This document shows, piece by piece, positions 34,895-64,000 of a DNA stretch of 64,000 nt. The stretch covers positions 10,106,001 through 10,170,000 of the forward strand of contig CP075494.1 in NCBI GenBank assembly GCA_021613535.1, given 5' to 3'. Made by a program: the position numbers and the translations under genes. Positions within the stretch are counted from its first letter, which is position 1. Each line of letters starts with the position of its first letter. The DNA is from Adineta vaga. Its lineage: Eukaryota > Animalia > Rotifera. Below the pieces are notes generated by a model. It worked only from the letters and a program-made list of their open reading frames with translations. It did not search any database and was not told the origin of the DNA.

Positions 34895-35202
34895 GATCGA
34901 TCTTTGTCTGTTTTTCTTTTTTTGTGAATAATCTAGTCTTTTGCTTTGTCTCATGTAATCTTCATATTTTTCTTTTTGTATTTTCTATGTTGTCAATTAT
35001 TTATTGAATACTTTTTTATCTAAAAGAAAAGAAGCCATTAAATAAGACAAAAGATTCTTCATCGAGGTGAGTACATTTCTATCCAATCACTTTGCATCAG
35101 GCTGTTCAACAAGTAATTACAACATCGAGACAAAATTTACGCAGTATATAAGTAGCTGAAAAAGCTGAATTGCTTTCATTTTTTTCGTTTTTAGATCCTA
35201 GA

Positions 35203-38200
35203 ATGTCGAAGAATACTTTACATGAATCTGCATCATCGGATGCACTTCGTTTAAAAGCTCTTCAATCTGGTTTTGAAAGTCGCGTTGAAGTAAATCAACG
35301 AATGTTGATCGATAAAATGCTTGCACGTTATTCATCTGATTTTGTTGTTTGCCGAGAATTAATTCAAAATTCGGACGATGCCAAAGCAACATCGTTTCAT
35401 TTTGAAATTACATGTGATGGTGGAACATCATCAACATCGGAAAAAGATTTTCATAATCAAACTATTACAGAAATTCGTGCCATTAATAATGGTCTTGTTT
35501 TTAATGAAATCGATTGGAAACGTGTTGCAGCTATAGCAGAAGGAAATACAAGTGTAGAATCCGTTGGTCAATTTGGTGTTGGATTTTTTTCAGTTTTTTC
35601 ATTTTCTGAAGAACCAATCATTACATCAGGAAATGAATATATGGCATTTGTATGGCGTGATGACAATTCTTTAACAACATTTCGTCATAAATTGACATCA
35701 GAACAACAATCAAAATTAACGTCAATTATTCTTAAAATGCGCACAAACTATATTTTACATACAGAAACTAAACTAGATTTCGATTCGACATCAGATTTGA
35801 ATGAAAAATCGACTACGAAATCACCGAATAGGAAAAAACAAAAGAAAAGTATACCAACACCATCAACTTCAACGAATGATATTATTCCAACATTGAATCT
35901 TTCACAATTAAAAGCATATTTTACCAAAGGTATGAATTCCCTGCTGACTCATGTTCATTTTCATTTCTTTCCTTTTATTTTCAGTTTTATCTTTCACTAA
36001 ATATATCAATGAATTAATTATTAAAATTAATCAAAAAACTATTTTTAAAGTCACGAAAACTAAAAAACCAATTCCATCATCTAAATCTCGATCACAATTT
36101 AAAACAAATTCTATTCATAATATGCTTCGTCTTGATACATTCATTCAAACAGAACAAATCTTCTCAATCGATCATGGACCATCGATTACATTAAATCATA
36201 TATCTGTTGATGCAACATTAATTATTGATGAAAATTATCATAATCACATTCGACGAATACTAAAGAAAAGTTTACCATCCAATGTTCAAATTCAACTTCT
36301 ATACACACCGAATGATGTTAGTAAAATGAATATCTTGAATTTTGAAATTGAATTATAGGAAGAGAATATTTTAGGTTATCATAAAACAACAACAACAATC
36401 GTCGGCAACTAATGATCTTCATATGAAAATTCTCAATTCTTTAATTCCATTAAAATTTCAAAATGATGAAATTGATCCATCTGGTTTGATTTTCATCGGT
36501 CTTGGTACACATCAAACAACAGGAATAGGAATGCATATTTACAGCCATTTAATTCCAACGATTGAAAGAGAAAATCTTGATTTACAAGATCCATATATAT
36601 CAAAATGGAATCGAGAATTATTATTATCCGTTGGACAAATTGCAAGATTTGTTTATGATCAATTGATTCATGAAAATAAACAATTCTATTCAACATTAGC
36701 ATCTTATTCTTTTCAACCATCAGTACCAAATAATGAAATTGGTATGTAAAGACGTTTTAGATTGTAATTAATTCTGATACCTTTTCTTTTCGATCTACAG
36801 GTTCGATTCTACTCGATGGATTCTTTTCTTCCAATAAAGATCTTTTTGTTCCTGTCAAACGAACACCCACTGATATGAATCTCTCATTGATTCCATCAAC
36901 ACAAGCCTATCTAGCAAATTCTCAATATATTCATTCGTTTCTGTCTTTACCACTTGTTCCATATGAATTAAGTCAAAATGGTTTATTTCAATCTTTAAAA
37001 GATCGTGATTTAATCATTGAAGTTGATAATGATTTAATTGAATCAACAATAACTACAACAATACTTTTATCAAACCAATTTGTAGACTTTCTTCATTGGT
37101 TATCTAGTCAACATCAAGAAGATAAACAGTACATCAAACGTTTATTATCAATTGTACGTTTTCGTGAAACTATACAATCACCGATTATTACATTAGAAAA
37201 ATTAAAGAACTATGATAATTTTAATATATCAACAATTCTACCGTTACCATCACATGTTTTACCTGCTAGTGTTGCTGCTTATTTATCACGAGAAGAATTA
37301 CAAAAACAACTATCATTGACACCATTTGCATTAAAAGATTTTCTACATTTTTATTTTCTTAAAAGTCAACAATATTTATTTACAAAAGAAAATTCATCAA
37401 CTTGTTTATTAAGTATTATTTCTAAACATTCTGGACAAATGAATAAAACAGAATGGAATAAATTAAAAACAACTCTATCAACAATACCATGTATACCAAC
37501 AAATCAAGGAATGAAAATACCAAATGAATCCTATATTCCATCAGCTATTCTATCACCAGAGTTACCTGTTATTACATTAAATGTTCCACAAAATTTAACT
37601 GAAGATGATAATGAAGACGATGAAAATCAATCAATCGTTGAAAATTTAGAAAATCCAGTATCAGCAGAATTTCTTAAACGATTAGGGTGTAGAACATTAA
37701 ATGTTCAATCATTTGTACATGCACGATCTTCATTGACAAATTCCAATTCATCTAATTCACATAATATGAAAACATTAATTGAACATCTGATGGAAGAAAG
37801 AGATAACATGAGTGAAGGAGATTTCAATGCATTGAAACAAAGTGAATGTCTGAAAGGTAAATATGAAACTACTTTTCTTTTTTGTGAATTAGTAGAATTT
37901 TTTCATTATATTCTAGGCACCACTCTAATACCAAGTAAAGAAACTACAAGAAAATATACTCCTCAAGATCTTCATTTTCCTTCGATTGCTATTGAATTAC
38001 AATGGTCAACTTTACCAATTATAGATTGGCATGATATCGATCCACGTTCACGTGAATATGCATTTCTAAAAGAAATTGGCGTACGCGAAGTACCTGATGT
38101 ACATAAATTAATTGATCGAATTATAGAAGAACATAATGAACAAAAGGTCAAATCGATTGTTGAATATAAATTACCTATAGCATTGAAATTTCTTGCTGAA

Positions 38201-40782
38201 AATTTCCAACAATATTATTCAAAATTATGGAAAACAGCTAAAATTAAACAACCTTTTCTTCCATCGTATTCTACGTCAAAAGCGCTAACATTATCATTGC
38301 CCGAAGAAGTGTTTAAAGGTACGATTTCTTCTCTCTTTCTACTACCATACATCTATTTTATTATTTGAATTAGATGAAAGTCCATTATGTGCTACATTAT
38401 TACCTGATGTTGTACAATTATTTGAAGAACATTTCAATATTGGATTACTTGGCGTTAAAGATCGTCCAACTCTTACAATCGCTTTTGATATTCTTATGGA
38501 AAAGAAAGAAAAAATCCTGAATGTACAATCAGCATCGAAAATTTTTGCGTATATGAATGAACTTGATGGTCTTAGTCGACCATTGATTGAACGTGTGGCA
38601 AAACTTGCATTTATTCCTCTCGAGGGTACAGATGAATTTATGAAACCATCACAAGTTTTTATTCGTCCAAATACAACAATAAATACGGCATCATCAAGAC
38701 TTCGACAAATGAATGTTATTATTTTATTGTCTTCAGAAGATGATGATAATAATGATAATGATGAAATAACGCGAGCAAATGGTACTGGAGGTCGTCGACG
38801 ACGAAAACGAAATGTGAAAACAACAATATCGAAAAATAAGAAAAGTAAAACAGCTTCATCAACTCCATTGGTTATGGATGATACAGATAAGAGTGGTTTA
38901 ATTGATTATGTTGATTATGGTTCAGAAGGCAATTCATTTCTACTTGGTGTTGGTGTACTTCATCAACCATCTGCACTTGTTCTAGCTGAACTACTCATTG
39001 ATCGGCAAGCAGATTATTTTGCTAATTTAAATCGAAATAATCCGGATGATTTAAAACAAAAGTTATTAGCTTATACAAGTTGTCTTCGACAGTTGGCCAT
39101 AGCCGCAAATGAATTACAATCAGTAGCATTACTCAAACGATTAAAGAACGAAGCTTGGTGTTTAGGATATCAAACAGTTGAACGACGTTCTACTAATGAA
39201 AGACAACGAATGTTCAAAATTGTCGCACCGAATGAAATCTATCTAGATGATGATCATCAATGTGCTATTGATCTTCGACCTTTATTACCACCAGATGAAT
39301 CTGAATTAACGAAATTATATGAGAAATTTGGTGCACAATGGTTATCGGAATGTGTAAAACGAACCTTAGTACATAAAGGTAAAAGGATTATTCAATGATC
39401 TTTTAAATTCATCATGTAAATGATATTCTAGGAAAAGTAGCTACATCAGATCGTGGTAATAAATTACGTGATTTAATTCAACATCGTCTCGATATGTTAT
39501 TTGTTAATAATCGAGTAATAATTTATATAACAATTTCTTTTCATATTCTTTTCTATTTAGGGAGAAAAAATGGACAATCTAGATGATAAACATGTTGATA
39601 TGTTACGAACAAATCTCGCCGTCTATGAAGTAGAAGCTATTCAATGTCAATTAACATTTCAAAAAAAGACCATAACACTTGAAGTAATTTCTTCGATAAT
39701 TTTTCCTTTTTCAATCAATCTTTATATATTTTTTCAGTCAACTGATAGCAGTTCTTGTGCTCTGGAAAATGATAAAAATAAAGTTGGTTTATATTTTCAA
39801 AAACAAATTCGTGAATTTGATTATATTGATATTGCAAGTGAACTAGCTCGATTTGTATTCAAAAAACCATTGGACACAGCCGTACATGCAATTAGTGATA
39901 AACTTGCTTCACCTTTAGAAACACTTAAACGTCGTGGTGTACCTGTCGATCGATTACTGCAACAACAGCAGCAGCAACAACAACAACATAATAATAATAA
40001 TCATCAACAAAATCTTCGTCCAACTATGCAAATGATCGAACCACAAACACAAACAAATCATCATTATCAAGAAAGTCATGTTGAAATGTCTGGTCGAGTA
40101 GAAGATTTCAATCGTCATCAAATCAAAGATGATGCAAAATTATTTTCTATGCTAAAAAAAGGTCGATCTTATACACAAACAAAATTTATTCAACAAGAAC
40201 ATGTCAAAGATGAAATCGATCATTCATGTGAAGCAGTACCATCGGCGAATATGACACGTTATAAAGAAGTATTTCATAATATACCATTATATATTGAACG
40301 AGATGTTCGAATTACCGAACAAATGCTGGATCGAGCGAAACAATTAGCATGGGTTCTCATCGGTCTTGCAAATCATGTATTTAAAATACCAGTTGAAACT
40401 TTACATCTTTATCGAGATATTAATGGAGGTAATAATATATTGTTGTTGTTTTTTTATAACAGACGATAGATTTCAATATTTTGTTCTAGCTCGCATTGCT
40501 TTTAATGATCGACGTGCATTATTCTTTAATCTTCGATATTATGAACAAGTTTTTGCTAATGAAGTTCATCCATATTTACAAGCAACTTCACCATCAATAC
40601 CAATCATTCATACAATTCTCAATTTTTATTTTATTTTAACATGTCATGAACTAGCACATAATTTGGAAATTGCACATAACTCAAATTTTATCAATCACTT
40701 AGAAACAATAGCAGTCAAATTTATGACAGAAAAAGATTTGTTTTTACAGCAGTTTTCATTTCAGAATTACTTACAGAATTGA
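35203..40782 (+). CDS. Sacsin-type GHKL ATPase with C-terminal HExxH metalloprotease (fungal DUF3684-like family), about 1,690 aa, about 10 exons
   Basis: VEVNQRMLIDKMLARYS, RELIQNSDDA (N box), NNGLVF, VGQFGVGFFSVF (G2 box), IFIGLGTHQTTG, IPTIERENLDL, IAFN...LFFN and CHELAHNLEIAHNSNF. Confidence 0.85.
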
Positions 40783-41359: not shown

Positions 41360-42011
41360 ATGCAGTATTCGTATAGTAAGTGAATGAGTTAGGAGCAAGG
41401 TATTGTAAATTACTATCCTCATTTTTCTCATAGTTTTCATCTTCATCATCTCTTTGACTATTATCAAAACAATAATTTTAGCAGATTTAATCAATGATGA
41501 AGCTAAACAAATTTCATCTTCGTCCTTACCATTTCAAAAGCCAGCGAATATGCCAGAATGTCTGTCAAAAAATCAACTTTCAAATATGTTAAATCGAGAT
41601 CGACGAGCATCCATTTCTCGTCCATATTTTCATCATTGGCGACCAGCTCGTGATAGTACTCGTTATTCAGCTAAGAATTCTTTGGCTTTTTCACCTCGTT
41701 TGGGCAAACGATCGTATGAAGATGAACAAGAATCGGATGAAAGTAACAACAAATTTGCTTACCGTTCTGTTGACCTTGAAACATTTCTTGCTATTCTGAC
41801 TGGCCATCTACAAGAGAAAAAAATTCATATTGTATATGAAGATTCTACAAAGATATGCTTATCTCAATCCATCAGCGACTCACTTATCCAACAACTTCTC
41901 GATAAAATTGACGCAAATCGACGTGATCAAAACACACAAGAAAAAGAAGAAATCTTTGGTCGACAATCATCATCCAAACATCCAATTTTATTTCGATATC
42001 GTCTAGGTTAA
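41360..42011 (+). CDS. PRXamide / pyrokinin-like neuropeptide precursor (AFSPRL-amide)
   Basis: ATG exon 41360-41375 plus a 58-bp intron gives signal peptide MQYSYIFIFIISLTIIKTIILA. Contains FSPRL-G-KR and C-terminal ILFRYRL-G-stop. Confidence 0.82.
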
Positions 42012-43844: not shown

Positions 43845-44255
43845 ATCAGCAAATATATTGACTCGATTTCATATTGCATATAAGAACGAGCAAAGAATTT
43901 ACTGGATATTGTAAGGATCAGCAAAGACGTTGACTCGATATCATATTGTATATAAGAACGAGCAAGGAATTTACTGGATATTGTAAGGATCAGCAAAGAC
44001 GTTGACTCGATATCATATTGTATATAAGAACGAGCAAGGAATTTACTGGATATTGTAAGGATCAGCAAAGACGTTGACTCGATATCATATTGTATATAAG
44101 AACGAGTAAAAGAATTTGCTGTATACATGAATCGGTTTAAAGATTGGCTCGATATTATATTATATATAAGAATGCGATCAATAAATAACTGAATAGAACG
44201 AAAGAACGATACAGCATATAGATTGAATCGACTTCTTATTTTGTATAAGAACGAG
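43845..44255. repeat. 72-bp tandem repeat in the LINE 3'UTR (about 3.5 near-perfect copies plus about 2 degenerate ones)
   Basis: ATCAGCAAA recurs at 43845, 43917, 43989 and 44061. TATAAGAACGAG-like motifs continue degenerately to about 44255. Confidence 0.92.
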
Positions 44256-44380: not shown

Positions 44381-47070
44381 TTAAATTTTGTCTAAGATGC
44401 ATTGTAGATGATTCTTCAGTGTAATGTCGTTGTTTGTTGTTGCCTTTTGAAGTGTATGTTTAAGTAGTCCTATTGCATAATCTTTGATTTTTGGAATGTT
44501 GCTGATCTTGTGGATATATTTGACAGATGTATATATGGGTAGTCCGAGTGCAGCTCTAATTGCTTTATTCTGCATGATTTGTAAACGGTCCCATACTTTT
44601 TGATCAGCAGTAAGGAGAATAGGATGTCCATAAATGATAACTGTGCGTACAATTGATTTGAAAATATTTATCATCGTCTTGTTGTTGGGTTCATATGCTG
44701 TTCTCGAAAGATATCGAAGTAGACCGATCCGAGGAGCAATCTTGCTTTCAATATGTTCGAGATGTGCTCGCCATTTTAATCTTTTATCTATAATTACACC
44801 CAAGTAACGTGTGGAGTCCAGTGGTTTGATGATGGTGTCTTCAACTTTAACTTTCACTGGATTCTTGTAGTGTTTTCTTGGATGTATGCTGAAGTGTATC
44901 AGCTCTGTCTTAGTTGGTTGAAGTTTTAATTTCCATGACTTGCACCAACTTTCGAATGCATCTATGGATTGTTGTAATCTGGTGTTAAGATTTGTTAAGG
45001 TGTTGCCAGATGTCCATAATGCAGTGTCGTCGGCGAACAACCCATGTTCTGTATGAGTTGGTATTCCATTCATCGAATCTGCCGTATACATAATATAAAG
45101 TAATGGTGATAACGGAGATCCTTGTGGTGTACCGCTCTTCAGATTAAACGGACGTGATAATATATTTTCGATTTCAATTGCAGCCGTTCTATTGCTTAAG
45201 AATGAGATCAGATAGTTGATGATGAAACAGGGAAGACGTAGATCATTAAGCTTGTATATCAAACCATCGTGCCATACCGAATCAAATGCGGCTTTGATGT
45301 CGAAAAGAATGACAGCTGAGTGACGTCGTCGACGTGGTCGTCTAAGTTGTCCTGCAGCGTATCTTTCTAATCGCACGATGTTGTATATAGTGCTTTTACC
45401 TGGTCTAAATCCGGCTTGTGTTGTGGTAAGATGTTTCGTCGTTCAAGTTCGAGCATTAAACGTTGTTTGATTATTTTCTCCAATAGTTTGCCTAAGCAAC
45501 TAAGGAGACTAATCGGTCGATAGCTAGACGGTTGTTGTTTGTCTTTCTTTGGCTTTAATAGAAGAATAATATTAGCCTTTTTCCACATTGCTGGAATATA
45601 ACCTTGTTTCAAAATTGCATTAAACAGATTTGTTAGATGCTGTACCAGTAATTTTGAATGATTCTTCAAACATCGGTTATGAATGTTGTCTGGACCAGTG
45701 GAGCTATTTCTAAGTTGTCTTATATGATTTTTGACTTCTTTTTCTTTGATTTGCTTCCACTTTGGTGTGTTTGAAGAGGTTATAGTTTTACTTTTGACTT
45801 TGTTTGCTTGGCGTGTTACTTGATCATGAAGTGGCAACGTATCAGCAGTGTGAGAGTAGACTTCATTTTCGAAGTAATCTGCAAATAAGTCTGCTTTCTC
45901 CTTGTCTGATGTTGCAGTTGTATTGTTGTATTTCATGATGTTGGCGTAGGTTTGCTTGATCCTTTTGTTGTGGAACTTGCGCACCGTCAGCCAAACTTTG
46001 TCCGAATACATTTTCTTATGGCATAAAGATGACATTAACTTGTTGAAGTTATTTCTTCTGTCGTTTCTAAGTGAATTTGTAAGCAAGACTTTGGAATTGT
46101 AATATAGATGTTTATCTAAGTTGTTTCCAGTCTTCTTCCATTTTCGATATGCTTGATGTTTTTGTTTTATCAGGCTTATCGATACTTCACTTGGTGTATA
46201 CGTTCGGATCATCTGCTTTGTTTGTGGAACGGCTTCTTTTGTTGCTTCTAGTATACTAGTGGTAATGAATGATGTATATTCTTCTATGTCTGCTGTTGAA
46301 TCTAAATGATGATCATTTTTCCACAGCATCAGTTGTTGATCTAACTTGCACCTAAATTTTGACCATTTTGCTGCTTTGAAATTAAATAAAATTCTTGACG
46401 AAGCCGGTTTGGGTTCAGCTCCGCAAGGAATATCAAATGTTAATGGTTTATGGCCATTTAATGCACCGATTGTTGGATGAGTCTCAACGTTTGATATGAA
46501 TGAAAGAAGTGGTTGACTTGCTAGAATCCAATCTAGTTTAACTTCATAATCATTTTTTTCGAAAGTTGGACTATCATCGTCGACACAATCAATAAGACCA
46601 TCTTTAAATAATTCTTGCAGCTGTCTTCCTCTAGCATTAGCTTGTTGTGATCCCATATTATATAATGTTGCATTAAGATCACCCATGATAATGCAGTTGT
46701 TGTTGACGTTATAAAGTTCGTGGAATAAGTTGATATCGATCTTTGCTTTTGGTGGTACGTAAATGGAGGATATTAGTATTGATTTGAATGATTTAGTTCG
46801 AATCTCTACTGCTATCGCTTCATTCTTGCAGGTTGTTTTGTTTAGTACTTCTTGACACTTGATATGTTGTTTCACTGCTAGTAATACTCCACCCCCAGCT
46901 TGTCCTATTCGATCATTTCTGAAGATGTTATAACCAAAAAGCGTGAATGGTCTTTCGCTCTTTAGATTAGTTTCATTAACAGAGATAATATCGTATTTGG
47001 AGAATCTGGCTAGGAGTTCATCTTTGTGTTTGGTAATTGAGTTAATGTTGATATGGCATAAACTAAGCAT
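44381..47070 (-). pseudogene. LINE ORF2 (APE endonuclease + reverse transcriptase), split by a 1-bp deletion near 45418
   Basis: HININSI, NET, RNDR, GDLNA, LDWIL, GPDNI and SYRPISLLSCLGKLLEK, then (Q)AGFRPGKST in the shifted frame, FDIKAAFDSVWH, GTPQGSPLSPLLY, FADD and YLGV. Confidence 0.92.
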
Positions 47071-48521
47071 CGTTGCTGCTTGTTTTAAGTGTTTTCTTGT
47101 CGTTTATAGATGCATCAGGAGAGTTGTTGGAAGAAAGGGCTCTCTTGTTTGTATTGGATCCTTCTTTTGTATTTTGTGCGTCTTTTGACGTAGTAGGAGT
47201 TGATGGCATAGTAGGTTTATTTGAAGTGACATTCTCTGTTGTAGACGATTTGTCAGCTTCACTCTGTTGTTTTTTTGGTTTTGGTTTGATGATCTTAACT
47301 GCTTGACTTTGTTCGTTGGAATCAGAGTCTGAATCAGTTAATATATATTTTTCTTCATTATTACGATCGAGGAGTCCGAATGATTTTTCGATCTTCTTGA
47401 TCTTCTGATGTAGTGCTTTGAATAGTCGATTGGTAGTTTTTTCGATGATGGTTTCCATTTTGCTGGTAAGAGCATTAATGATATCGTCGAATAAATTGTC
47501 CGTTAATAGTTGTTTTTGTGTTTGGTTGAATTGTGATAGAGGTGGGAAGTCATGTGTGCTGTAGATTGATGGTGCTTGTGTTACTTGTTTGCTTGTTGTT
47601 GCATATTGGTTAACCATGTTTTGCATCTTCTTTTCTTGTTCTCTATAATGTGAACATTCTTTGGAAGTAGCAATATGATTACCTTTACAGTTGTAGCACT
47701 TGACTGCGTCATCTGTAACAGTACATTTGTCGTTGCTATGATTTTCACCACATCGACTACATACTTGTTGCTTGGTTTTGCAGTATTTGGCTACATGGTT
47801 GTATTTTAAGCAAATGTAACATTGCACCGGTTTGGAATTTTGTGTGGCTGGTTCAGCGGTGAAGTGCATGCAATCCACTTGTAAACCAGTTTGCACAAAG
47901 ATATTTCGATTTGTTGCATCGCTAAATGATATCTTGACTGTTCGTGTTGGAGTCTTACCATCTTTGCTTGTTAATCGAATAACTTCTGTTACTTCAAGAC
48001 CAACGTTCTTTAGTGCTTCAGTTATTCGATCGTTTGGTAGTTCTAGATCGACTCTTTTTACGAAGGCGATCTTTTCTGTGTCCTTGATTCTTTGTATAGA
48101 TCTTGGAACGTATACCGTGGCTGATGGTTGACCGTTTGACGATAATATTGATGAAAAGTCGTTTAATATGTTGTTGAACGATTTAACATCTCTTGCATAT
48201 AATGTGAATATTCCATTTCGTCCAAGTTGGATGTCATGGATATTGACTTCAGCAAGATGTTGCTTCAATATATCATTTAGCTGCAATTTGTTTAAGTTAA
48301 CACCCTCTAGAATAAGAGGGGCGATACTAAATGTTGGTTGGCTTGATTTTAAAGCATATGGTCCTGCTTTGCCATCTTGTGTTGTTCGTTGTGGGCTTTG
48401 TATGCTTTGTGAGCTTTTGTGGCCCTTGTTTTCGTTGTGTGGTGGTTGCTCTTTGTTGGTTGTCCACGCTGTGATAGCGTCTCTGTTGACCACCGCCACC
48501 CCTTCCTCTCTTGGAAGGCAT
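47063..48521 (-). pseudogene. LINE ORF1 gag-like protein with three CCHC knuckles; 5' ATG out of frame
   Basis: Knuckles CYICLKYNHVAKYC, CSRCGENHSNDKC and CYNCKGNHIATSKEC. ATG at 48521 (MPSKRGRGGGG) is in a different frame from the main ORF. Overlaps the ORF2 start by 8 bp. Confidence 0.88.
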
Positions 48522-49170: not shown

Positions 49171-52100
49171 CAAACATTTAGGTATAGTATAACCCAACTT
49201 TGGATAACGAGAATCGTAAAGGTGAATCTCAGTGATCGACTCGCCAAAGACAAACATTTAGGCATAGTATAACCCAACTTTAGGGAAGGAGAATCATACA
49301 GGTGAATATGAATGATCGAGTCGCGAAAGACAAACATTTAGGTATAGTATAACCCAACTTTAGAGAAGGAGAATAGTAAAGGTGCATAAGACTGATAGAT
49401 GCACGAAAGACAAACATTAAGGTATAGTATAACCCAACTTTAGGGAAGGAGAATAGTACAGGTGAATCTGAATGATAGACTCACCAAAGACAAACATTTA
49501 GGTAAAGTATAACCCAACTTTAGAGATGGAGAATAGTACGGGTGTATCTGAGTGATAGATTCACGAAAGACAAACATTTAGGTATAGTATAACCCAACTT
49601 TAGAGAAGGAGAATAGTAAAGGTGCATAAGACTGATAGATTCACGAAAGACAAACATTTAGGTATAGTATAACCCAACTTTAGAGATGGAGAATAGTAAA
49701 GGTGCATAAGACTGATAGATTCACGAAAGACAAACATTTAGGTATAGTATAACCCAACTTTAGAGATGGAGAATAGTACAGGTGCATAAGACCGATAGAT
49801 TCACCAAAGACAAACATTTAGGTAAAGTATAACCCAACTTTAGAGATGGAGAATAGTAAAGGTGCATAAGACTGATAGATTCACGAAAGACAAACATTTA
49901 GGTAAAGTATAACCCAACTTTAGAGAAGGAGAATAGCACAGGTATATTTGACTGATAGATTCGCCAAAGACAAACATTTAGGTATAGTATAACCCAACTT
50001 TAGAGATGGAGTATAGTACAGGTGCATAAGACCGATAGATTCACCAAAGACAAACATTTAGGTAAAGTATAACCCAACTTTAGAGATGGAGAATAGTAAA
50101 GGTGCATAAGACTGATAGATTCACGAAAGACAAACATTTAGGTAAAGTATAACCCAACTTTAGAGAAGGAGAATAGTACAGGTGTATCTGACTGATAGAT
50201 TCACGAAAGACAAACATTTAGGTATAGTATAACCCAACTTTAGAGATGGAGTATAGTACAGGTGCATAAGACCGATAGATTCACCAAAGACAAACATTTA
50301 GGTAAAGTATAACCCAACTTTAGAGATGGAGAATAGTAAAGGTGCATAAGACTGATAGATTCACGAAAGACAAACATTTAGGTAAAGTATAACCCAACTT
50401 TAGAGAAGGAGAATAGTACAGGTGAATCTGAATGATAGACTCGCGAAAGACAAACATTTAGGTATAGTATAACCCAACTTTAGAGATGGAGTATAGTACA
50501 GGTGCATAAGACCGATAGATTCACCAAAGACAAACATTTAGGTAAAGTATAACCCAACTTTAGGGAAGGAGAATAGTACAGGTGCATAAGACTGATAGAT
50601 TCACCAAAGACAAACATTTAGGTATAGTATAACCCAACTTTGGAGAAGGAGAATAGTACAGGTGCATAAGACTGATAGATTCACCAAAGACAAACATTTA
50701 GGTATAGTATAACCCAACTTTAGAGAAGGAGAATAGTACAGGTGCATAAGACTGATAGATTCACCAAAGACAAACATTTAGGTATAGTATAACCCAACTT
50801 TGGAGAAGGAGAATAGTAAAGGTGCATAAGACTGATAGATTCACGAAAGACAAACATTTAGGTATAGTATAACCCAACTTTAGAGAAGGAGAATAGTACA
50901 GGTGCATAAGACTGATAGATTCACGAAAGACAAACATTTAGGTATAGTATAACCCAACTTTAGAGAAGGAGAATAGTACAGGTGCATAAGACTGATAGAT
51001 TCACGAAAGACAAACATTTAGGTATAGTATAACCCAACTTTGGAGAAGGAGAATAGTAAAGGTGCATAAGACTGAGAGATTCACGAAAGACAAACATTTA
51101 GGTACAGTATAACCCAACTTTAGGGAAGGAAAATAGTGCAGGTGAATCTGAATGATAGACTCGCGAAAGACAAACATTTAGGTATAGTATAACCCAACTT
51201 TAGGGAAGGAGAATAGTACAGGTGCATAAGACTGATAGATTCACGAAAGACAAACATTTAGGTATAGTATAACCCAACTTTAGAGAAGGAGAATAGTACA
51301 GGTGCATAAGACTGATAGATTCACCAAAGACAAACATTTAGGTAAAGTATAACCCAACTTTAGGGAAGGAGAATAGTACAGGTGCATAAGACTGATAGAT
51401 TCACCAAAGACAAACATTTAGGTATAGTATAACCCAACTTTGGAGAAGGAGAATAGTAAAGGTGCATAAGACTGAGAGATTCACCAAAGACAAACATTTA
51501 GGTAAAGTATAACCCAACTTTAGGGAAGGAGAATAGTACAGGTGCATAAGACTGATAGATTCACCAAAGACAAACATTTAGGTATAGTATAACCCAACTT
51601 TGGAGAAGGAGAATAGTAAAGGTGCATAAGACTGAGAGATTCACGAAAGACAAACATTTAGGTATAGTATAACCCAACTTTAGAGAAGGAGAATAGTACA
51701 GGTGCATAAGACTGATAGATTCACGAAAGACAAACATTTAGGTATAGTATAACCCAACTTTAGAGAAGGAGAATAGTACAGGTGCATAAGACTGATAGAT
51801 TCACGAAAGACAAACATTTAGGTATAGTATAACCCAACTTTGGAGAAGGAGAATAGTAAAGGTGCATAAGACTGAGAGATTCACGAAAGACAAACATTTA
51901 GGTATAGTATAACCCAACTTTAGAGAAGGAGAATAGTACAGGTGCATAAGACTGATAGATTCACGAAAGACAAACATTTAGGTATAGTATAACCCAACTT
52001 TAGAGAAGGAGAATAGTACAGGTGCATAAGACTGATAGATTCACGAAAGACAAACATTTAGGTATAGTATAACCCAACTTTAGGGAAGGAGAATAGTACA

Positions 52101-55100
52101 GGTGCATAAGACTGATAGATTCACCAAAGACAAACATTTAGGTATAGTATAACCCAACTTTAGAGATGGAGAATAGTACGTGTGTATCTGAGTGATAGAT
52201 TCACGAAAGACAAACATTTAGGTATAGTATAACCCAACTTTAGAGAAGGAGAATAGTAAAGGTGCATAAGACTGATAGATTCACGAAAGACAAACATTTA
52301 GGTATAGTATAACCCAACTTTGGAGAAGGAGAATAGTAAAGGTGCATAAGACTGATAGATTCACGAAAGACAAACATTTAGGTATAGTATAACCCAACTT
52401 TAGGGAAGGAGAATAGTACAGGTGAAGCTGAATGATAGACTCGCGAAAGACAAACATTTAGGTATAGCATAACCCAACTTTGGAGAAGGAGAATAGTAAA
52501 GGTGCATAAGACTGATAGATTCACGAAAGACAAACATTTAGGTATAGCATAACCCAACTTTGGAGAAGGAGAATAGTAAAGGTGCATAAGACTGATAGAT
52601 TCACGAAAGACAAACATTTAGGTATAGTATAACCCAACTTTGGAGAAGGAGAATAGTAAAGGTGCATAAGACTGATAGATTCACGAAAGACAAACATTTA
52701 GGTATAGTATAACCCAACTTTGGAGAAGGAGAATAGTAAAGGTGCATAAGACTGATAGATTCACGAAAGACAAACATTTAGGTATAGTATAACCCAACTT
52801 TGGAGAAGCAGAATAGTAAAGGTGCATAAGACTGATAGATGCAAGAAAGACAAACATTTAGGTATACTATAACCCAACTTTAGAGATGGAGAATAGTACA
52901 GGTGCATAAGACCGATAGATGCACCAAAGACAAACATTTAGGTAAAGTATAACCCAACTTTAGAGATGGAGAATAGTACGTGTGTATCTGAGTGATAGAT
53001 TCACGAAAGACAAACATTTAGGTATAGTATAACCCAACTTTAGAGAAGGAGAATAGTAAAGGTGCATAAGACTGATAGATTCACGAAAGACAAACATTTA
53101 GGTATAGTATAACCCAACTTTAGAGAAGGAGAATAGTAAAGGTGCATAAGACTGATAGATTCACGAAAGACAAACATTTAGGTATAGTATAACCCAACTT
53201 TAGAGATGGAGAATAGTACAGGTGCATCTGACTGATAGATTCACGAAAGACAAACATTTAGGTATAGTATAACCCAACTTTAGAGAAGGAGAATAGTAAA
53301 GGTGCATAAGACTGATAGATTCACGAAAGACAAACATTTAGGTATAGTATAACCCAACTTTAGAGAAGGAGAATAGTAAAGGTGCATAAGACTGATAGAT
53401 TCACGAAAGACAAACATTTAGGTATAGTATAACCCAACTTTGGAGAAGGAGAATAGTAAAGCTGCATAAGACTGAGAGATTCACGAAAGACAAACATTTA
53501 GGTATAGTATAACCCAACTTTAGAGAAGGAGAATAGTAAAGGTGCATAAGACTGATAGATTCACGAAAGACAAACATTTAGGTATAGTATAACCCAACTT
53601 TAGAGAAGGAGAATAGTACAGGTGCATAAGACTGATAGATTCACGAAAGACAAACATTTAGGTATAGTATAACCCAACTTTAGAGAAGGAGAATAGTACA
53701 GGTGAATCTGAATGATAGACTCGCGAAAGACAAACATTTAGGTATAGTATAACCCAACTTTAGAGAAGGAGAATAGTAAAGGTGCATAAGACTGATAGAT
53801 GCACGAAAGACAAACATTTAGGTATAGTATAACCCAACTTTAGAGAAGGAGAATAGTAAAGGTGCATAAGACTGATAGATTCACGAAAGACAAACATTTA
53901 GGTATAGTATAACCCAACTTTAGAGATGGAGAATAGTACAGGTGAATCTGAGTGATAGATTCGCGAAAGACAAACATTTAGGTATAGTATAACCCAACTT
54001 TAGAGATGGAGAATAGTACAGATGCATAAGACTGATAGATTCACGAAAGACAAACATTTAGGTATAGTATAACCCAACTTTAGAGAAGGAGAATAGTAAC
54101 AGGTGCATAAGACTGATAGATTCGCGAAAGACAAACATTTAGGTAAAGTATAACCCAACTTTAGAGAAGGAGAATAGAACAGGTATATTTGACTGATAGA
54201 TTCGCCAAAGACAAACATTTAGGTATAGCATAACCCAACTTTAGGGAAGGAAAATAGTGCAGGTGAATCTGAATGATAGACTCGCGAAAGACAAACATTT
54301 AGGTATAGTATAACCCAACTTTAGGGAAGGAGAATAGTACAGGTGAAGCTGAATGATAGACTCGCGAAAGACAAACATTTAGGTACAGTATAACCCAACT
54401 TTAGAGATGGAGAATAGTAAAGGTGAATATGAATGATAGATTCACGAAAGACAAACATTTAGGTATAGTATAACCCAACTTTAGAGAAGGAGAATAGTAA
54501 AGGTGCATAAGACTGATAGATTCACGAAAGACAAACATTTAGGTATAGTATAACCCAACTTTAGAGAAGGAGAATAGTAAAGGTGCATAAGACTGATAGA
54601 TTCACGAAAGACAAACATTTAGGTATAGTATAACCCAACTTTAGAGAAGGAGAATAGTAAAGGTGCATAAGACTGATAGATTCACGAAAGACAAACATTT
54701 AGGTATAGTATAACCCAACTTTAGAGAAGGAGAATAGTACAGGTGCATAAGACTGATAGATTCACGAAAGACAAACATTTAGGTATAGTATAACCCAACT
54801 TTAGAGAAGGAGAATAGTACAGGTGCATAAGACTGATAGATTCACGAAAGACAAACATTTAGGTATAGTATAACCCAACTTTAGAGAAGGAGAATAGTAA
54901 AGGTGCATAAGACTGAGAGATTCACGAAAGACAAACATTTAGGTATAAGTATAACCCAACTTTAGGGAAGGAGAATAGTACAGGTGAATCTGAATGATAG
55001 ACTCGCGAAAGACAAACATTTAGGTATAGTATAACCCAACTTTGGAGAAGCAGAATAGTAAAGGTGCATAAGACTGATAGATGCAAGAAAGACAAACATT

Positions 55101-58100
55101 TAGGTATAGTATAACCCAACTTTAGAGATGGAGAATAGTACGGGTGTATCTGAGTGATAGATTCACGAAAGACAAACATTTAGGTATAGTATAACCCAAC
55201 TTTAGAGATGGAGAATAGTACAGATGCATAAGACTGATAGATTCACGAAAGACAAACATTTAGGTATAGTATAACCCAACTTTAGAGAAGGAGAATAGTA
55301 AAGGTGCATAAGACTGATAGATTCACGAAAGACAAACATTTAGGTAAAGTATAACCCAACTTTAAAGAAGGAAGGAGAATAGAACAGGTATATTGACTGA
55401 ATCTGAATGATAGACTCGCGAAAGACAAACATTTAGGTATAGTATAACCCAACTTTAGGGAAGGAGAATAGTACAGGTGAAGCTGAATGATAGACTCGCG
55501 AAAGACAAACATTTAGGTATAGCATAACCAAACTTTAGGGAAGGAGAATAGTACAGGTGCATAAGACTGATAGATTCACCAAAGACAAACATTTAGGTAT
55601 AGTATAACCCAACTTTAGAGATGGAGAATAGTACGTGTGTATCTGAGTGATAGATTCACGAAAGACAAACATTTAGGTATAGTATAACCCAACTTTAGAG
55701 AAGGAGAATAGTAAAGGTGCATAAGACTGATAGATTCACGAAAGACAAACATTTAGGTATAGTATAAACCAACTTTGGAGAAGGAGAATAGTAAAGGTGC
55801 ATAAGACTGATAGATTCACGAAAGACAAACATTTAGGTATAGTATAACCCAACTTTGGAGAAGCAGAATAGTAAAGGTGCATAAGACTGATAGATGCAAG
55901 AAAGACAAACATTTAGGTATAGTATAACCCTACTTTAGAGAAGGAGAATAGTAAAGGTGCATAAGACTGATAGATTCACGAAAGACAAACATTTAGGTAT
56001 AGTATAACCCAACTTTAGAGAAGGAAAATAGTAAAGGTGCATAAGACTGATAGATTCACGAAAGACAAACATTTAGGTATAGTATAACCCAACTTTAGAG
56101 ATGGAGAATAGTACAGGTGCATAAGACCGATAGATGCACCAAAGACAAACATTTAGGTATAGTATAACCCAACTTTAGAGATGGAGAATAGTACAGGTGC
56201 ATAAGACCGATAGATGCACCAAAGACAAACATTTAGGTAAAGTATAACCCAACTTTAGAGATGGAGAATAGTACGGGTGTATCTGAGTGATAGATTCACG
56301 AAAGACAAACATTTAGGTATAGTATAACCCAACTTTGGAGAAGGAGAATAGTAAAGGTGCATAAGACTGATAGATTCACCAAAGACAAACATTTAGGTAT
56401 AGTATAACCCAACTTTGGAGAAGGAGAATAGTAAAGGTGCATAAGACTGATAGATTCACCAAAGACAAACATTTAGGTATAGTATAACCCAACTTTGGAG
56501 AAGGAGAATAGTAAAGGTGCATAAGACTGATAGATTCACCAAAGACAAACATTTAGGTATAGTATAACCCAACTTTGGAGAAGGAGAATAGTACAGGTGC
56601 ATAAGACTGATAGATTCACGAAAGACAAACATTTAGGTATAGTATAACCTAACTTTGGAGAAGGAGAATAGTAAAGGTGCATAAGACTGATAGATTCACG
56701 AAAGACAAACATTTAGGTATAGTATAACCTAACTTTGGAGAAGGAGAATAGTAAAGGTGCATAAGACTGATAGATTCACGAAAGACAAACATTTAGGTAA
56801 AGTATAACCCATCTTTGGAGACGTAGAATAGTACAGGTGCATAAGACTGATAGATTCACGAAAGACAAACATTTAGGTATAGTATAACCTAACTTTGGAG
56901 AAGGAGAATAGTACAGGTGAATCTGAATGATCGAGTCGCGAAAGACAAACATTTAGGTATAGTATAACCTAACTTTGGAGAAGGAGAATAGTAAAGGTGC
57001 ATAAGACTGATAGATTCACGAAAGACAAACATTTAGGTATAGTATAACCTAACTTTGGAGAAGGAGAATAGTAAAGGTGCATAAGACTGATAGATTCACG
57101 AAAGACAAACATTTAGGTATAGTATAACCTAACTTTGGAGAAGGAGAATAGTAAAGGTGCATAAGACTGATAGATTCACGAAAGACAAACATTTAGGTAT
57201 AGTATAACCTAACTTTGGAGAAGGAGAATAGTAAAGGTGCATAAGACTGATAGATTCACGAAAGACAAACATTTAGGTATAGTATAACCCATCTTTGGAG
57301 AAGGAGAATAGTAAAGGTGCATAAGACTGATAGATTCACGAAAGACAAACATTTAGGTATAGTATAACCTAACTTTGGAGAAGGAGAATAGTACAGGTGA
57401 ATCTGAATGATCGAGTCGCGAAAGACAAACATTTAGGTATAGTATAACCTAACTTTGGAGAAGGAGAATAGTAAAGGTGCATAAGACTGATAGATTCACG
57501 AAAGACAAACATTTAGGTAAAGTATAACCCATCTTTGGAGACGTAGAATAGTACAGGTGCATAAGACTGATAGATTCACGAAAGACAAACATTTAGGTAT
57601 AGTATAACCTAACTTTGGAGAAGGAGAATAGTAAAGGTGCATAAGACTGATAGATTCACGAAAGACAAACATTTAGGTATAGTATAACCTAACTTTGGAG
57701 AAGGAGAATAGTAAAGGTGCATAAGACTGATAGATTCACGAAAGACAAACATTTAGGTAAAGTATAACCCATCTTTGGAGACGTAGAATAGTACAGGTGC
57801 ATAAGACTGATAGATTCACGAAAGACAAACATTTAGGTATAGTATAACCTAACTTTGGAGAAGGAGAATAGTACAGGTGAATCTGAATGATCGAGTCGCG
57901 AAAGACAAACATTTAGGTATAGTATAACCTAACTTTGGAGAAGGAGAATAGTAAAGGTGCATAAGACTGATAGATTCACGAAAGACAAACATTTAGGTAT
58001 AGTATAACCTAACTTTGGAGAAGGAGAATAGTAAAGGTGCATAAGACTGATAGATTCACGAAAGACAAACATTTAGGTAAAGTATAACCCATCTTTGGAG

Positions 58101-61100
58101 ACGTAGAATAGTACAGGTGCATAAGACTGATAGATTCACGAAAGACAAACATTTAGGTATAGTATAACCTAACTTTGGAGAAGGAGAATAGTACAGGTGA
58201 ATCTGAATGATCGAGTCACGAAAGACAAACATTTAGGTATAGTATAACCTAACTTTGGAGAAGGAGAATAGTAAAGGTGCATAAGACTGATAGATTCACG
58301 AAAGACAAACATTTAGGTATAGTATAACCTAACTTTGGAGAAGGAGAATAGTAAAGGTGCATAAGACTGATAGATTCACGAAAGACAAACATTTAGGTAT
58401 AGTATAACCTAACTTTGGAGAAGGAGAATAGTAAAGGTGCATAAGACTGATAGATTCACGAAAGACAAACATTTAGGTATAGTATAACCCATCTTTGGAG
58501 AAGGAGAATAGTAAAGGTGCATAAGACTGATAGATTCACCAAAGACAAACATTTAGGTATAGTATAACCTAACTTTGGAGAAGGAGAATAGTAAAGGTGC
58601 ATAAGACTGATAGATTCACGAAAGACAAACATTTAGGTATAGTATAACCTAACTTTGGAGAAGGAGAATAGTAAAGGTGCATAAGACTGATAGATTCACG
58701 AAAGACAAACATTTAGGTATAGTATAACCCAACTTTGGAGAAGGAGAATAGTAAAGGTGCATAAGACTGATAGATTCACGAAAGACAAACATTTAGGTAT
58801 AGTATAACCTAACTTTGGAGAAGGAGAATAGTAAAGGTGCATAAGACTGATAGATTCACGAAAGACAAACATTTAGGTATAGTATAACCTAACTTTGGAG
58901 AAGGAGAATAGTAAAGGTGCATAAGACTGATAGATTCACGAAAGACAAACATTTAGGTATAGTATAACCCAACTTTAGAGATGGAGAATAGTACGGGTGT
59001 ATCTGAGTGATAGATTCACGAAAGACAAACATTTAGGTATAGTATAACCCAACTTTAGAGATGGAGAATAGTACGGGTGTATCTGAGTGATAGATTCACG
59101 AAAGACAAACATTTAGGTATAGTATAACCCAACTTTAGAGAAGGAGAATAGTAAAGGTGCATAAGACTGATAGATTCACGAAAGACAAACATTTAGGTAA
59201 AGTATAACCCAACTTTAGAGAAGGAGAATAGAACAGGTATATTTGACTGATAGATTCGCCAAAGACAAACATTTAGGTATAGCATAACCCAACTTTAGGG
59301 AAGGAAAATAGTGCAGGTGAATCTGAATGATAGACTCGCGAAAGACAAACATTTAGGTATAGCATAACCAAACTTTAGGGAAGGAGAATAGTACAGGTGC
59401 ATAAGACTGATAGATTCACCAAAGACAAACATTTAGGTATAGTATAACCCAACTTTAGAGATGGAGAATAGTACGTGTGTATCTGAGTGATAGATTCACG
59501 AAAGACAAACATTTAGGTATAGTATAACCCAACTTTAGAGAAGGAGAATAGTAAAGGTGCATAAGACTGATAGATTCACGAAAGACAAACATTTAGGTAT
59601 AGTATAAACCAACTTTGGAGAAGGAGAATAGTAAAGGTGCATAAGACTGATAGATTCACGAAAGACAAACATTTAGGTATAGTATAACCCAACTTTGGAG
59701 AAGGAGAATAGTAAAGGTGCATAAGACTGAGAGATTCACGAAAGACAAACATTTAGGTACAGTATGACCCAACTTTAGGGAAGGAGAATAGTACAGGTGA
59801 ATCTGAATGATAGACTCGCGAAAGACAAACATTCAGGTATAGTATAACCCAACTTTGGAGAAGCAGAATAGTAAAGGTGCATAAGACTGATAGATGCAAG
59901 AAAGACAAACATTTAGGTATAGTATAACCCTACTTTAGAGAAGGAGAATAGTAAAGGTGCATAAGACTGATAGATTCACGAAAGACAAACATTTAGGTAT
60001 AGTATAACCCAACTTTAGAGAAGGAAAATAGTAAAGGTGCATAAGACTGATAGATTCACGAAAGACAAACATTTAGGTATAGTATAACCCAACTTTAGAG
60101 ATGGAGAATAGTACAGGTGCATAAGACCGATAGATGCACCAAAGACAAACATTTAGGTATAGTATAACCCAACTTTAGAGATGGAGAATAGTACAGGTGC
60201 ATAAGACCGATAGATGCACCAAAGACAAACATTTAGGTAAAGTATAACCCAACTTTAGAGATGGAGAATAGTACGGGTGTATCTGAGTGATAGATTCACG
60301 AAAGACAAACATTTAGGTATAGTATAACCCAACTTTGGAGAAGGAGAATAGTAAAGGTGCATAAGACTGATAGATTCACCAAAGACAAACATTTAGGTAT
60401 AGTATAACCCAACTTTGGAGAAGGAGAATAGTAAAGGTGCATAAGACTGATAGATTCACCAAAGACAAACATTTAGGTATAGTATAACCCAACTTTGGAG
60501 ACGCAGAATAGTACAGGTGCATAAGACTGATAGATTCACGAAAGACAAACATTTAGGTATAGTATAACCTAACTTTGGAGAAGGAGAATAGTAAAGGTGC
60601 ATAAGACTGATAGATTCACGAAAGACAAACATTTAGGTATAGTATAACCTAACTTTGGAGAAGGAGAATAGTAAAGGTGCATAAGACTGATAGATTCACG
60701 AAAGACAAACATTTAGGTAAAGTATAACCCATCTTTGGAGACGTAGAATAGTACAGGTGCATAAGACTGATAGATTCACGAAAGACAAACATTTAGGTAT
60801 AGTATAACCTAACTTTGGAGAAGGAGAATAGTACAGGTGAATCTGAATGATCGAGTCGCGAAAGACAAACATTTAGGTATAGTATAACCTAACTTTGGAG
60901 AAGGAGAATAGTAAAGGTGCATAAGACTGATAGATTCACGAAAGACAAACATTTAGGTATAGTATAACCCATCTTTGGAGACGTAGAATAGTACAGGTGC
61001 ATAAGACTGATAGATTCACGAAAGACAAACATTTAGGTATAGTATAACCCATCTTTGGAGAAGGAGAATAGTAAAGGTGCATAAGACTGATAGATTCACG

Positions 61101-64000
61101 AAAGACAAACATTTAGGTATAGTATAACCCAACTTTGGAGAAGGAGAATAGTAAAGGTGCATAAGACTGAGAGATTCACGAAAGACAAACATTTAGGTAT
61201 AGTATAACCCAACTTTAGAGAAGGAGAATAGTACAGGTGCATAAGACTGATAGATTCACGAAAGACAAACATTTAGGTATAGTATAACGTAAGTTTAGAG
61301 AAGGAGAATAGTACAGGTGCATAAGACTGATAGATTAACGAAAGACAAACATTTAGGTATAGTATAACCCAACTTTAGAGAAGGAGAATAGTAAAGGTGC
61401 ATAAGACTGATAGATTCACGAAAGACAAACATTTAGGTATAGTATAAACCAACTTTGGAGAAGGAGAATAGTAAAGGTGAATCTGAATGATAGACTCGCG
61501 AAAGACAAACATTTAGGTATAGTATAACCCAACTTTGGAGAAGCAGAATAGTAAAGGTGCATAAGACTGATAGATGCAAGAAAGACAAACATTTAGGTAT
61601 AGTATAACCCAACTTTAGAGATGGAGAATAGTACGGGTGTATCTGAGTGATAGATTCACGAAAGACAAACATTTAGGTATAGTATAACCCAACTTTAGAG
61701 AAGGAGAATAGTAAAGGTGCATAAGACTGATAGATTCACGAAAGACAAACATTTAGGTAAAGTATAACCCAACTTTAGAGAAGGAGAATAGAACAGGTAT
61801 ATTTGACTGATAGATTCGCCAAAGACAAACATTTAGGTATAGCATAACCCAACTTTAGGGAAGGAAAATAGTGCAGGTGAATCTGAATGATAGACTCGCG
61901 AAAGACAAACATTTAGGTATAGTATAACCCAACTTTAGGGAAGGAGAATAGTACAGGTGAAGCTGAATGATAGACTCGCGAAAGACAAACATTTAGGTAT
62001 AGCATAACCAAACTTTAGGGAAGGAGAATAGTACAGGTGCATAAGACTGATAGATTCACCAAAGACAAACATTTAGGTATAGTATAACCCAACTTTAGAG
62101 ATGGAGAATAGTACGTGTGTATCTGAGTGATAGATTCACGAAAGACAAACATTTAGGTATAGTATAACCCAACTTTGGAGAAGGAGAATAGTAAAGGTGC
62201 ATAAGACTGATAGATTCACGAAAGACAAACATTTAGGTATAGTATAACCCAACTTTGGAGAAGGAGAATAGTAAAGGTGCATAAGACTGATAGATTCACG
62301 AAAGACAAACATTTAGGTATAGTATAACCCAACTTTGGAGAAGGAGAATAGTAAAGGTGCATAAGACTGATAGATTCACGAAAGACAAACATTTAGGTAT
62401 AGTATAAACCAACTTTGGAGAAGGAGAATAGTAAAGGTGCATAAGACTGATAGATTCACGAAAGACAAACATTTAGGTATAGTATAACCCAACTTTGGAG
62501 AAGGAGAATAGTAAAGGTGCATAAGACTGATAGATTCACGAAAGACAAACATTTAGGTATAGTATAAACCAACTTTGGAGAAGGAGAATAGTAAAGGTGC
62601 ATAAGACTGAGAGATTCACGAAAGACAAACATTTAGGTACAGTATAACCCAACTTTAGGGAAGGAGAATAGTACAGGTGAATCTGAATGATAGACTCGCG
62701 AAAGACAAACATTCAGGTATAGTATAACCCAACTTTAGAGAAGGAGAATAGTACGGGTGTATCTGAGTGATAGATTCACGAGAGACAAACATTTAGGTAT
62801 AGTATAACCCAACTTTAGAGACGCAGAATAGTAAAGGTGAATCTGAATGATCGATTCACGAAAGACAAACATTTAGGTACAGTATAACCCAACTTTAGAG
62901 ACGCAGAATAGTAAAGGTGAATCTGAATGATCGATTCACGAAAGACAAACATTTAGGTACAGTATAACCCAACTTTAGAGACGCAGAATAGTAAAGGTGC
63001 ATAAGACTGATAGATTCACGAAAGACAAACATTTAGGTACAGTATAACCCAACTTTAGAGACGCAGAATAGTAAAGGTGAATCTGAATGATCGATTCACG
63101 AAAGACAAACATTTAGGTATAGTATAACCCAACTTTAGAGAAGGAGAATAGTACGGGTGTATCTGAGTGATAGATTCACGAGAGACAAACATTTAGGTAT
63201 AGTATAACCCAACTTTAGAGACGCAGAATAGTAAAGGTGAATCTGAATGATCGATTCACGAAAGACAAACATTTAGGTACAGTATAACCCAACTTTAGAG
63301 ACGCAGAATAGTAAAGGTGAATCTGAATGATCGATTCACGAAAGACAAACATTTAGGTACAGTATAACCCAACTTTAGGGAAGGAGAATAGTACAGGTGA
63401 AGCTGAATGATCGCTTCACGAAAGACAAACATTTAGGTATAGTATAACCCAACTTTAGAGACGCAGAATAGTAAAGGTGAATCAGAATGATCGATTCACC
63501 AAAGACAAACATTTAGGTATAGTATAACGCAACTTTAGAGAAGGAGAATAGTACGGGTGTATCTGAGTGATCGATTCACGAAAGACAAACATTTAGGTAT
63601 AGTATAACCCAACTTTAGAGACGCAGAATAGTAAAGGTGAATCTGAATGATCGATTCACGAGAGACAAACATTTAGGTATAGTATAACCCAACTTTAGAG
63701 ACGCAGAATAGTAAACGTGAATCTGAGTGATCGATTCACCAAAGACAAACATTTAGGTATAGTATAACGTAAGTTTAGAGAAGGAGAATAGTACGGGTGT
63801 ATCTGAGTGATAGATTCATGAAAGACAAACATTTAGGTATAGTATAACCCAACTTTGGAGAAGGAGAATAGTACAGGTGAATCAGAATGATCGATTCACC
63901 AAAGACAAACATTTAGGTATAGTATAACCCAACTTTGGAGAAGGAGAATAGTAAAGGTGCATAAGACTGATAGATTCACGAAAGACAAACATTTAGGTAT
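49171..64000. repeat. 80-bp satellite array, about 185 copies, continuing past window end
   Basis: Consensus CAAACATTTAGGTATAGTATAACCCAACTTTAGAGAAGGAGAATAGTAAAGGTGCATAAGACTGATAGATTCACGAAAGA; units start at 49171, 49251, 49331 and so on. Confidence 0.99.

Follow-up and report, generated by a model that had tools for sequence, protein, structure and literature searches.

What kind of protein does gene I4U23_025179 of the bdelloid rotifer Adineta vaga encode, and did the gene reach this animal from a fungus, as a preliminary description of the locus had proposed? The gene lies in a stretch of 64,000 nt (GCA_021613535.1, contig CP075494.1, positions 10,106,001 to 10,170,000; C5:10106001-10170000 in the genome searched here), the whole of which is called the window below. 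Its product, UJR22115.1 (P0160), is titled 'hypothetical protein I4U23_025179 [Adineta vaga]' in the database. We find that I4U23_025179 is native to A. vaga and transcribed, and that it belongs, as a member not yet characterised, to a family already catalogued; it is not a new kind of system. The protein is probably one paralogue of a eukaryotic family in which a sacsin/Nov-type GHKL ATPase, a DUF3684 region and a C-terminal zincin are combined, and thus a nuclease-less relative of the bacterial system Tiamat. The gene was not derived from sampled fungi and was already present in bdelloids before they radiated.

The 1,692 amino acids (aa) of the database protein match the window exon by exon at 100% identity, close to the ~1,690 aa and about nine introns of the preliminary description, whose quoted motifs are spread over seven plus-strand pieces of open reading frame (ORF) from 35170 to 40782. 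All nine introns are of the GT-AG type and 46-61 nt long. The database protein was used for every full-length analysis; joined exons served the identity check and the codons for the ratio of non-synonymous to synonymous substitutions (dN/dS) only. The transcription unit is composed as follows:

35203-40782, plus strand: coding region of I4U23_025179, from exact spliced mapping of P0160 (10 exons, 9 introns)
35203-35929, 35985-36316, 36375-36741, 36801-37856, 37917-38318, plus strand: exons 1-5
38374-39378, 39432-39514, 39561-39683, 39738-40428, 40490-40782, plus strand: exons 6-10
35193-35202, plus strand: trans-splice acceptor AG (35193-35194), then an 8-nt 5′ untranslated region before the ATG, from a contig of run X8

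In runs X1, X8 and X5, which belong to three studies, transcript contigs skip all nine introns exactly at the GT..AG sites of the annotation; the unspliced DNA of the gene is found in run X11. One X8 contig starts at 35193 and carries nine loose letters, CTTACCAAG, ahead of this position. The sequence CTTACCAAGAG followed by GT has 54 copies in the genome, compared with 0-2 for a reversed control, and these copies mostly form divergent pairs with ~168 bp between them, the layout expected of spliced-leader RNA genes. Moreover, a 23-nt leader has been reported on many bdelloid mRNAs (PMC1925144). Given the leader remnant, the gene copies and the reported leader, the mRNA of I4U23_025179 is most likely trans-spliced at AG 35193-35194. 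The full 23-nt leader sequence that was tried had no exact match in the genome, where only the observed 3′ end was confirmed. Clusters that are probably spliced-leader RNA genes lie, for example, at C5:9884354-9925971 and C5:10912929-10934589, the largest ~0.2 Mb before the window.

Compared with five environmental bdelloid-like orthologous contigs, I4U23_025179 has a dN/dS of 0.11-0.16; it is under purifying selection. Its GC content of 0.28-0.32 equals that of the neighbourhood, and the neighbouring genes are of ordinary animal type (CH domain, ATP12, UCH and Fringe).

The domain content had been read from motifs in the preliminary description as a sacsin/Hsp90-type ATPase of the DUF3684 family, with a basic insert resembling a nuclear localisation signal (NLS), a poly-Q and a C-terminal HELAH motif of Wss1 spacing that was predicted to belong to a zincin. 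Each of these elements is present:

35308-36043, plus strand: sacsin-type GHKL (Bergerat) ATPase domain, aa 36-262 (Pfam SACS)
35305-35334, plus strand: LIDKMLARYS
35353-35382, plus strand: motif I, RELIQNSDDA, intact
35482-35502, plus strand: motif II, sacsin-like variant INNGLVF
35563-35598, plus strand: G2 box VGQFGVGFFSVF, intact
36176-39496, plus strand: DUF3684 region, aa 307-1318 (Pfam PF12449)
36489-36524, plus strand: motif IFIGLGTHQTTG
36552-36584, plus strand: IPTIERENLDL
38787-38849, plus strand: basic NLS-like insert GGRRRRKR...KNKKSK, aa 1100-1120 (read from the sequence)
39960-39986, plus strand: run of nine Q, aa 1440-1448, in a poorly predicted linker (read from the sequence)
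40173-40767, plus strand: Wss1-like zincin domain, aa 1511-1688, interrupted by intron 9 (AlphaFold models and structure comparison)
40495-40506, plus strand: IAFN
40645-40689, plus strand: zinc-site motif HELAHNLEIAHNSNF (H1648, E1649, H1652, H1658; read from the sequence)

Pfam SACS (PF25794) scores 68.7 bits on P0160 (cut-off 32.8), and PF12449 scores 404.6 bits against a gathering score of 27 (E 1.2e-120), covering profile positions 135-1095 of 1098. When exon pieces were scanned separately, the same two families were hit (SACS 5e-19; DUF3684 4e-25, 8e-49 and 4e-20), DUF3684 again above its threshold. Among solved structures, the ATPase part has sequence matches to the Hsp90-like domains of sacsin (1.6e-9) and to Hsp90 N-domains (1e-7), and its G2 box contains GQFGVGF, as in Hsp90. 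Moreover, the PADLOC profiles for TmtA, the Tiamat protein, match P0160 (PDLC03969, 2.9e-27 over four stretches; PDLC03965, 1.1e-9). Pfam found no PD-(D/E)xK (DUF3883) nuclease on P0160, and the last 315 aa are modelled as a helical linker and a zincin. Nor did Pfam find a UBL, DnaJ or HEPN domain on P0160, and there was a single SACS match.

The C-terminus was modelled with AlphaFold (AF2) as aa 1378-1692, with a predicted local distance difference test (pLDDT) score of 84, and as aa 1508-1692, with pLDDT 89 and a predicted template modelling score of 0.86. The fold consists of a beta-sheet and helices; model residues 81-94, adjoining the Q run, have pLDDT <50. Among 48,161 chains, both models found Saccharomyces cerevisiae Wss1 (5xbn) as the best structural match (Z 7.7/7.8; root-mean-square deviation 3.2 Å over 112-113 of 128 residues, 18-19% identity) and Schizosaccharomyces pombe Wss1 (5ln5) as the second (Z 7.2/7.0). 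Other zincins follow, with SPRTN at Z 5.2-5.3. The Foldseek lists of the two models contain nearly nothing but zincins (selecase, Wss1, jannalysin, M1 and M61 peptidases). When a family profile was searched against the PDB, the S. pombe WLM protease came first (E 0.045) and Wss1p third (0.079), and the profile alignment puts the HELAH motif on the Wss1 motif of 5jig and 5xbn. Based on the models, the structure rankings, the Foldseek lists and the profile alignment, the predicted C-terminal domain is a zincin whose nearest relative is Wss1, with metal-site spacing identical to that of Wss1.

The HExxH-x5-H of I4U23_025179 reads HELAHNLEIAH (40645-40677). A C-terminal HExxH was seen in 60 family proteins; in these, the pattern HE[LIVM][AGS]HN-x4-H sits 8-95 residues from the end. 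Alignments of 49-50 sequences, spanning fungi, non-fungal eukaryotic relatives and bdelloids, show that H1648, E1649, H1652 and N1653 are invariant and that H1658 is conserved in no fewer than 90% of members.

How does this protein relate to known systems? A 2026 preprint has linked Tiamat, an ATPase-nuclease of bacterial defence, with sacsin, NO VEIN and DUF3684 proteins, and reported that the Bacillus cereus protein is an ATPase and that Tiamat has a Wss1-like fold ahead of its effector (10.64898/2026.09.30.754977). Tiamat (TmtA, B. cereus) and plant NO VEIN share with I4U23_025179 a homologous GHKL ATPase/DUF3684 core followed by a Wss1-like fold. However, the preprint describes the fold in Tiamat proper as lacking the motif, whereas I4U23_025179 has a full HExxH-x5-H and terminates with the zincin, with no PD-(D/E)xK nuclease. 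The scheme of the preprint, which is based on InterProScan and misses the zincin, would probably file the protein under 'Type II-A', that is, ATPase and DUF3684 only. The crosslink proteases Wss1 and SPRTN (WLM, SprT-like) have the zincin fold and the identical HExxH-x5-H spacing, but here the zincin ends a 1,692-aa ATPase and does not stand beside ubiquitin, SUMO or Cdc48-binding motifs. Human sacsin has the same type of ATPase, including the NN(G/A) variant of motif II, but contains three ATPase repeats together with the UBL, DnaJ and HEPN domains; I4U23_025179 has one repeat. The sacsin/Tiamat ATPase family thus has a widespread eukaryotic branch (fungi, Acanthamoeba and bdelloids) with a terminal Wss1-like fold and a full zinc site.

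We propose that the predicted N-terminal ATPase would work like other GHKL clamps, by ATP-driven closure or dimerisation, with the long DUF3684 repeat region serving to bind a client, and that the C-terminal Wss1-like zinc protease would act as the effector and cut the bound protein. I4U23_025179 is thus a concrete candidate for an ATP-controlled protease, and both crosslink repair and immune-type sensing are possible roles; the preliminary description had suggested proteostasis, DNA-damage repair or defence. Several observations weigh against this reading. The Foldseek E-values are only ~0.1, and Z values below 8 fall in the range that the structure-comparison tool calls middling. Pfam WLM (PF08325) stays below its threshold of 26 bits (14.2 and 17.0) and matches around the motif only, as does the last ORF piece on its own (weak match at HELAH, 0.0067); by sequence alone, the C-terminus gave nothing significant against the PDB. 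Moreover, motif II (INNG) has Asn at the position of the adenine-binding Asp of Hsp90/GyrB, as do sacsin and the fungal consensus. Because of this replacement, neither ATP binding nor ATP use is assured. One Rotaria magnacalcarata paralogue (P0008/P0157) carries Arg where the third His would be (HELAHNLVSQR...) and may have lost protease activity, and in Tiamat proper, according to the preprint, the Wss1-like fold is inactive (10.64898/2026.09.30.754977). The last two points would also suit a zincin that is non-catalytic, a structural or binding module as in Tiamat proper, which would leave the protein as an ATPase scaffold or sensor only. The invariance of the H, E, H and N of HExxHN, the retention of the third His in most of the aligned sequences and the purifying selection on I4U23_025179 all argue against such a loss of catalysis, and we consider it unlikely.

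Given the proposal of a fungal source, we examined how the family is distributed. An exhaustive comparison of exon 4 with 1.84 billion representatives found only 212 proteins. The named ones are bdelloid or fungal, apart from Acanthamoeba, which enters through P0342, a member of one 90% cluster with Acanthamoeba castellanii ACA1_183390. No named non-bdelloid animal, Brachionus included, is among the hits of these searches, which did not reach unannotated animal genomes. Seven relatives are neither bdelloid nor fungal (P0342, P0035, P0341, P0046, P0065, P0079 and P0126), and a word search with P0035 as query returned 7 proteins only. A metagenome scan yielded mainly bdelloid-like contigs, plus five further GC-rich relatives. 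In the contigs that were checked, P0035 and P0046 have introns, P0065 and P0341 occupy a single uninterrupted frame, and P0079 shows one frame change. The measured GC content of the non-bdelloid, non-fungal relatives is 45-68%, compared with 30% in bdelloids. On contig L010, the nearest non-bdelloid gene is intron-free across aa 231-1358, and 7 codons separate its closest intron from a bdelloid one; the introns on L010 are long and T-rich, and the flanks are microsatellite-like. Among the genes adjoining these relatives, just a urea-transporter fragment and an Mrr-like domain were recognisable. The latter belongs to a 1,192-aa neighbour of P0079 with an Mrr-type restriction endonuclease domain, on a 13,668-bp contig (L012, from ERZ17090024; GC 55-68%) whose long ORFs are for the most part uninterrupted and without Pfam match. 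The contig of P0341 (L020, from SRR33549326) has at its 5′ end, positions 1-28, the sequence AGCTTATACTTATTTGAG directly before the start region. It is speculative that this is a spliced-leader remnant: its start resembles that of the bdelloid leader, but the leader sequence compared is the one that had no exact match in the A. vaga genome.

A search for the family patterns in 185,579 species genomes of bacteria and archaea gave 31 pattern matches and no relative, and a bacterial or archaeal origin was rejected. The giant-virus route was likewise rejected, with no relative of this subfamily among the viral contigs of IMG/VR.

A maximum likelihood (ML) tree was built in IQ-TREE under LG+F+G4 from 42 sequences and 1,323 columns, and a second tree under the site-heterogeneous LG+C20 model with posterior mean site frequencies (PMSF) from 667 conservative columns. 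The named fungi (Zoopagomycota, Mucoromycota, Basidiomycota and Ascomycota) form one clade that excludes the bdelloids, with support of 100/100 under LG+F+G4 and 99 under PMSF, and their order resembles the fungal species tree. A second clade has the form (Acanthamoeba, (P0126, ((P0065, (P0079, P0046)), ((P0341, P0035), bdelloids)))), with internal supports of 98/97, 99.8/100 and 100/100. Acanthamoeba is its only named non-bdelloid member and is basal there. The PMSF tree gives the same picture. When the bdelloids were forced together with the fungal clade, the best such tree was 54.6 log-likelihood units worse (approximately unbiased (AU) test, p 0.0002).

The fungal DUF3684 proteins (PF12449, 'Sacsin/Nov domain-containing protein') resemble the bdelloid protein in having an N-terminal SACS, DUF3684, the C-terminal HE[LIVM][AGS]HN-x4-H tail and a length of ~1,650-1,800 aa, but are only 21-27% identical to it and form the separate clade described above. 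Four residues past the third zinc-site His, fungi usually have His, whereas bdelloids have Phe, as in Wss1. Moreover, fungi apparently have one copy per listed genome, compared with at least six in A. vaga. A. castellanii ACA1_183390 (XP_004345949.1) likewise combines SACS with DUF3684 and belongs to the clade that contains the bdelloids; however, it is longer (2,029-2,124 aa), has a GC3 of 0.85, is ~26% identical to P0035, and is basal, not sister, to the bdelloids.

Within A. vaga (100.8 Mb, 6 contigs) we identified at least six loci of the family, 43-46% identical over exon 4. The named bdelloid relatives come from Adineta, Rotaria and Didymodactylos, and the trees contain several orthologue groups, each with more than one bdelloid genus. 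All nine introns of I4U23_025179 match introns of the paralogues P0175 and/or P0184 in column and phase, five being common to both. Because of these common introns and the multi-genus orthologue groups, we place both duplication and intron gain before the bdelloid radiation, which agrees with the host-type introns and old age in bdelloids that the preliminary description had claimed. Metagenome contigs L031-L037 and L041 (up to 75 kb, GC 0.32) carry rotifer-like orthologues from the environment, 71% identical to I4U23_025179 and 57% to the paralogue P0163. They are more distant than Adineta-Rotaria pairs and therefore come from unsampled rotifer lineages.

Where, then, did the bdelloid genes come from? 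An old horizontal acquisition from a fungus, with host introns gained later, has some appeal: foreign genes are a well-known feature of bdelloids, no other named group with this architecture is nearly as large as the fungi, and named non-bdelloid animals are absent from the hits. However, the fungal clade, with its species-tree-like order, leaves the bdelloids out, they group instead with Acanthamoeba and the other non-fungal eukaryotes, and the AU test rejects their union with the fungi. Since the trees and the AU test exclude the bdelloids from the fungal clade, a fungal donor is not supported and we regard this origin as highly improbable. A plausible-looking transfer from fungus to animal is thereby corrected: the fungal similarity reflects database sampling, and the nearest relatives are non-fungal.

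We tentatively favour an old transfer from a non-fungal eukaryote (an amoebozoan or other protist) to the bdelloid stem lineage, followed by intron gain and duplication. The bdelloids are nested with strong support in a grade of non-bdelloid eukaryotes that differ from them in GC content and whose basal named member is Acanthamoeba, the bdelloid introns are not common to the gene on L010, and the 212 hits include no named metazoan relative. Nevertheless, the introns and flanks of L010 would fit an animal too, and unannotated animal genomes lay beyond the searches. It is also possible, though we judge it the less likely course, that the gene descended vertically from an ancestor of Amoebozoa, fungi and animals, and persisted in bdelloids and some few lineages with sparse sampling while most animals lost it. 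With Acanthamoeba as root, the tree takes the form (Amoebozoa, (Fungi, (other eukaryotes + bdelloids))), the shape of the species tree if the others are holozoan, and the host-like composition throughout, the ordinary animal neighbours and the old intron set common to the paralogues would all fit such descent. Yet it requires loss in almost every annotated animal phylum, with no hit in Brachionus or any other named non-bdelloid animal. Because no annotated non-bdelloid animal shows the gene, transfer from a non-fungal eukaryote is somewhat likelier. If the non-fungal sequences beside the bdelloids are amoebozoan or from another protist, the bdelloid genes would represent an old transfer; if they are holozoan, vertical descent with heavy loss would follow.

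A bolder scenario joins this origin to the proposed function. Here, bdelloids would have taken a Tiamat-type immune sensor with an active Wss1-like protease effector from an amoebozoan-like protist and expanded it to at least six copies per genome, beside sister architectures with nuclease or DarT-like effectors. We think this distinctly unlikely in its entirety. If true, it would amount to an animal arsenal of ATP-gated effectors against viruses or transposons, or against protein-DNA damage after desiccation.

Lastly, we describe the surroundings of I4U23_025179 in the window. Just downstream, a plus-strand ORF at 41454-42011 without Pfam match holds ...AFSPRLGKR and ends ...LFRYRLG. By its FxPRL-amide motif it looks like a pyrokinin-like neuropeptide precursor; with Gly as the amidation signal and KR as the cleavage site, it would yield peptides ending in PRL-amide and YRL-amide. 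A tandem repeat of 72/144 bp occupies 43845-44172. The nearby zone of transposable elements and satellite that the preliminary description had mentioned is indeed there. Its minus-strand member (44381-48499) is a retrotransposon resembling a long interspersed nuclear element, with three overlapping ORFs that include an endonuclease/exonuclease/phosphatase domain and a reverse transcriptase across two frames; its upstream ORF (47063-48499) has no Pfam match. An 80-bp satellite fills 49171-64000 with 185 copies (93% matches), has strong GC and AT skew, and continues past the end of the window.

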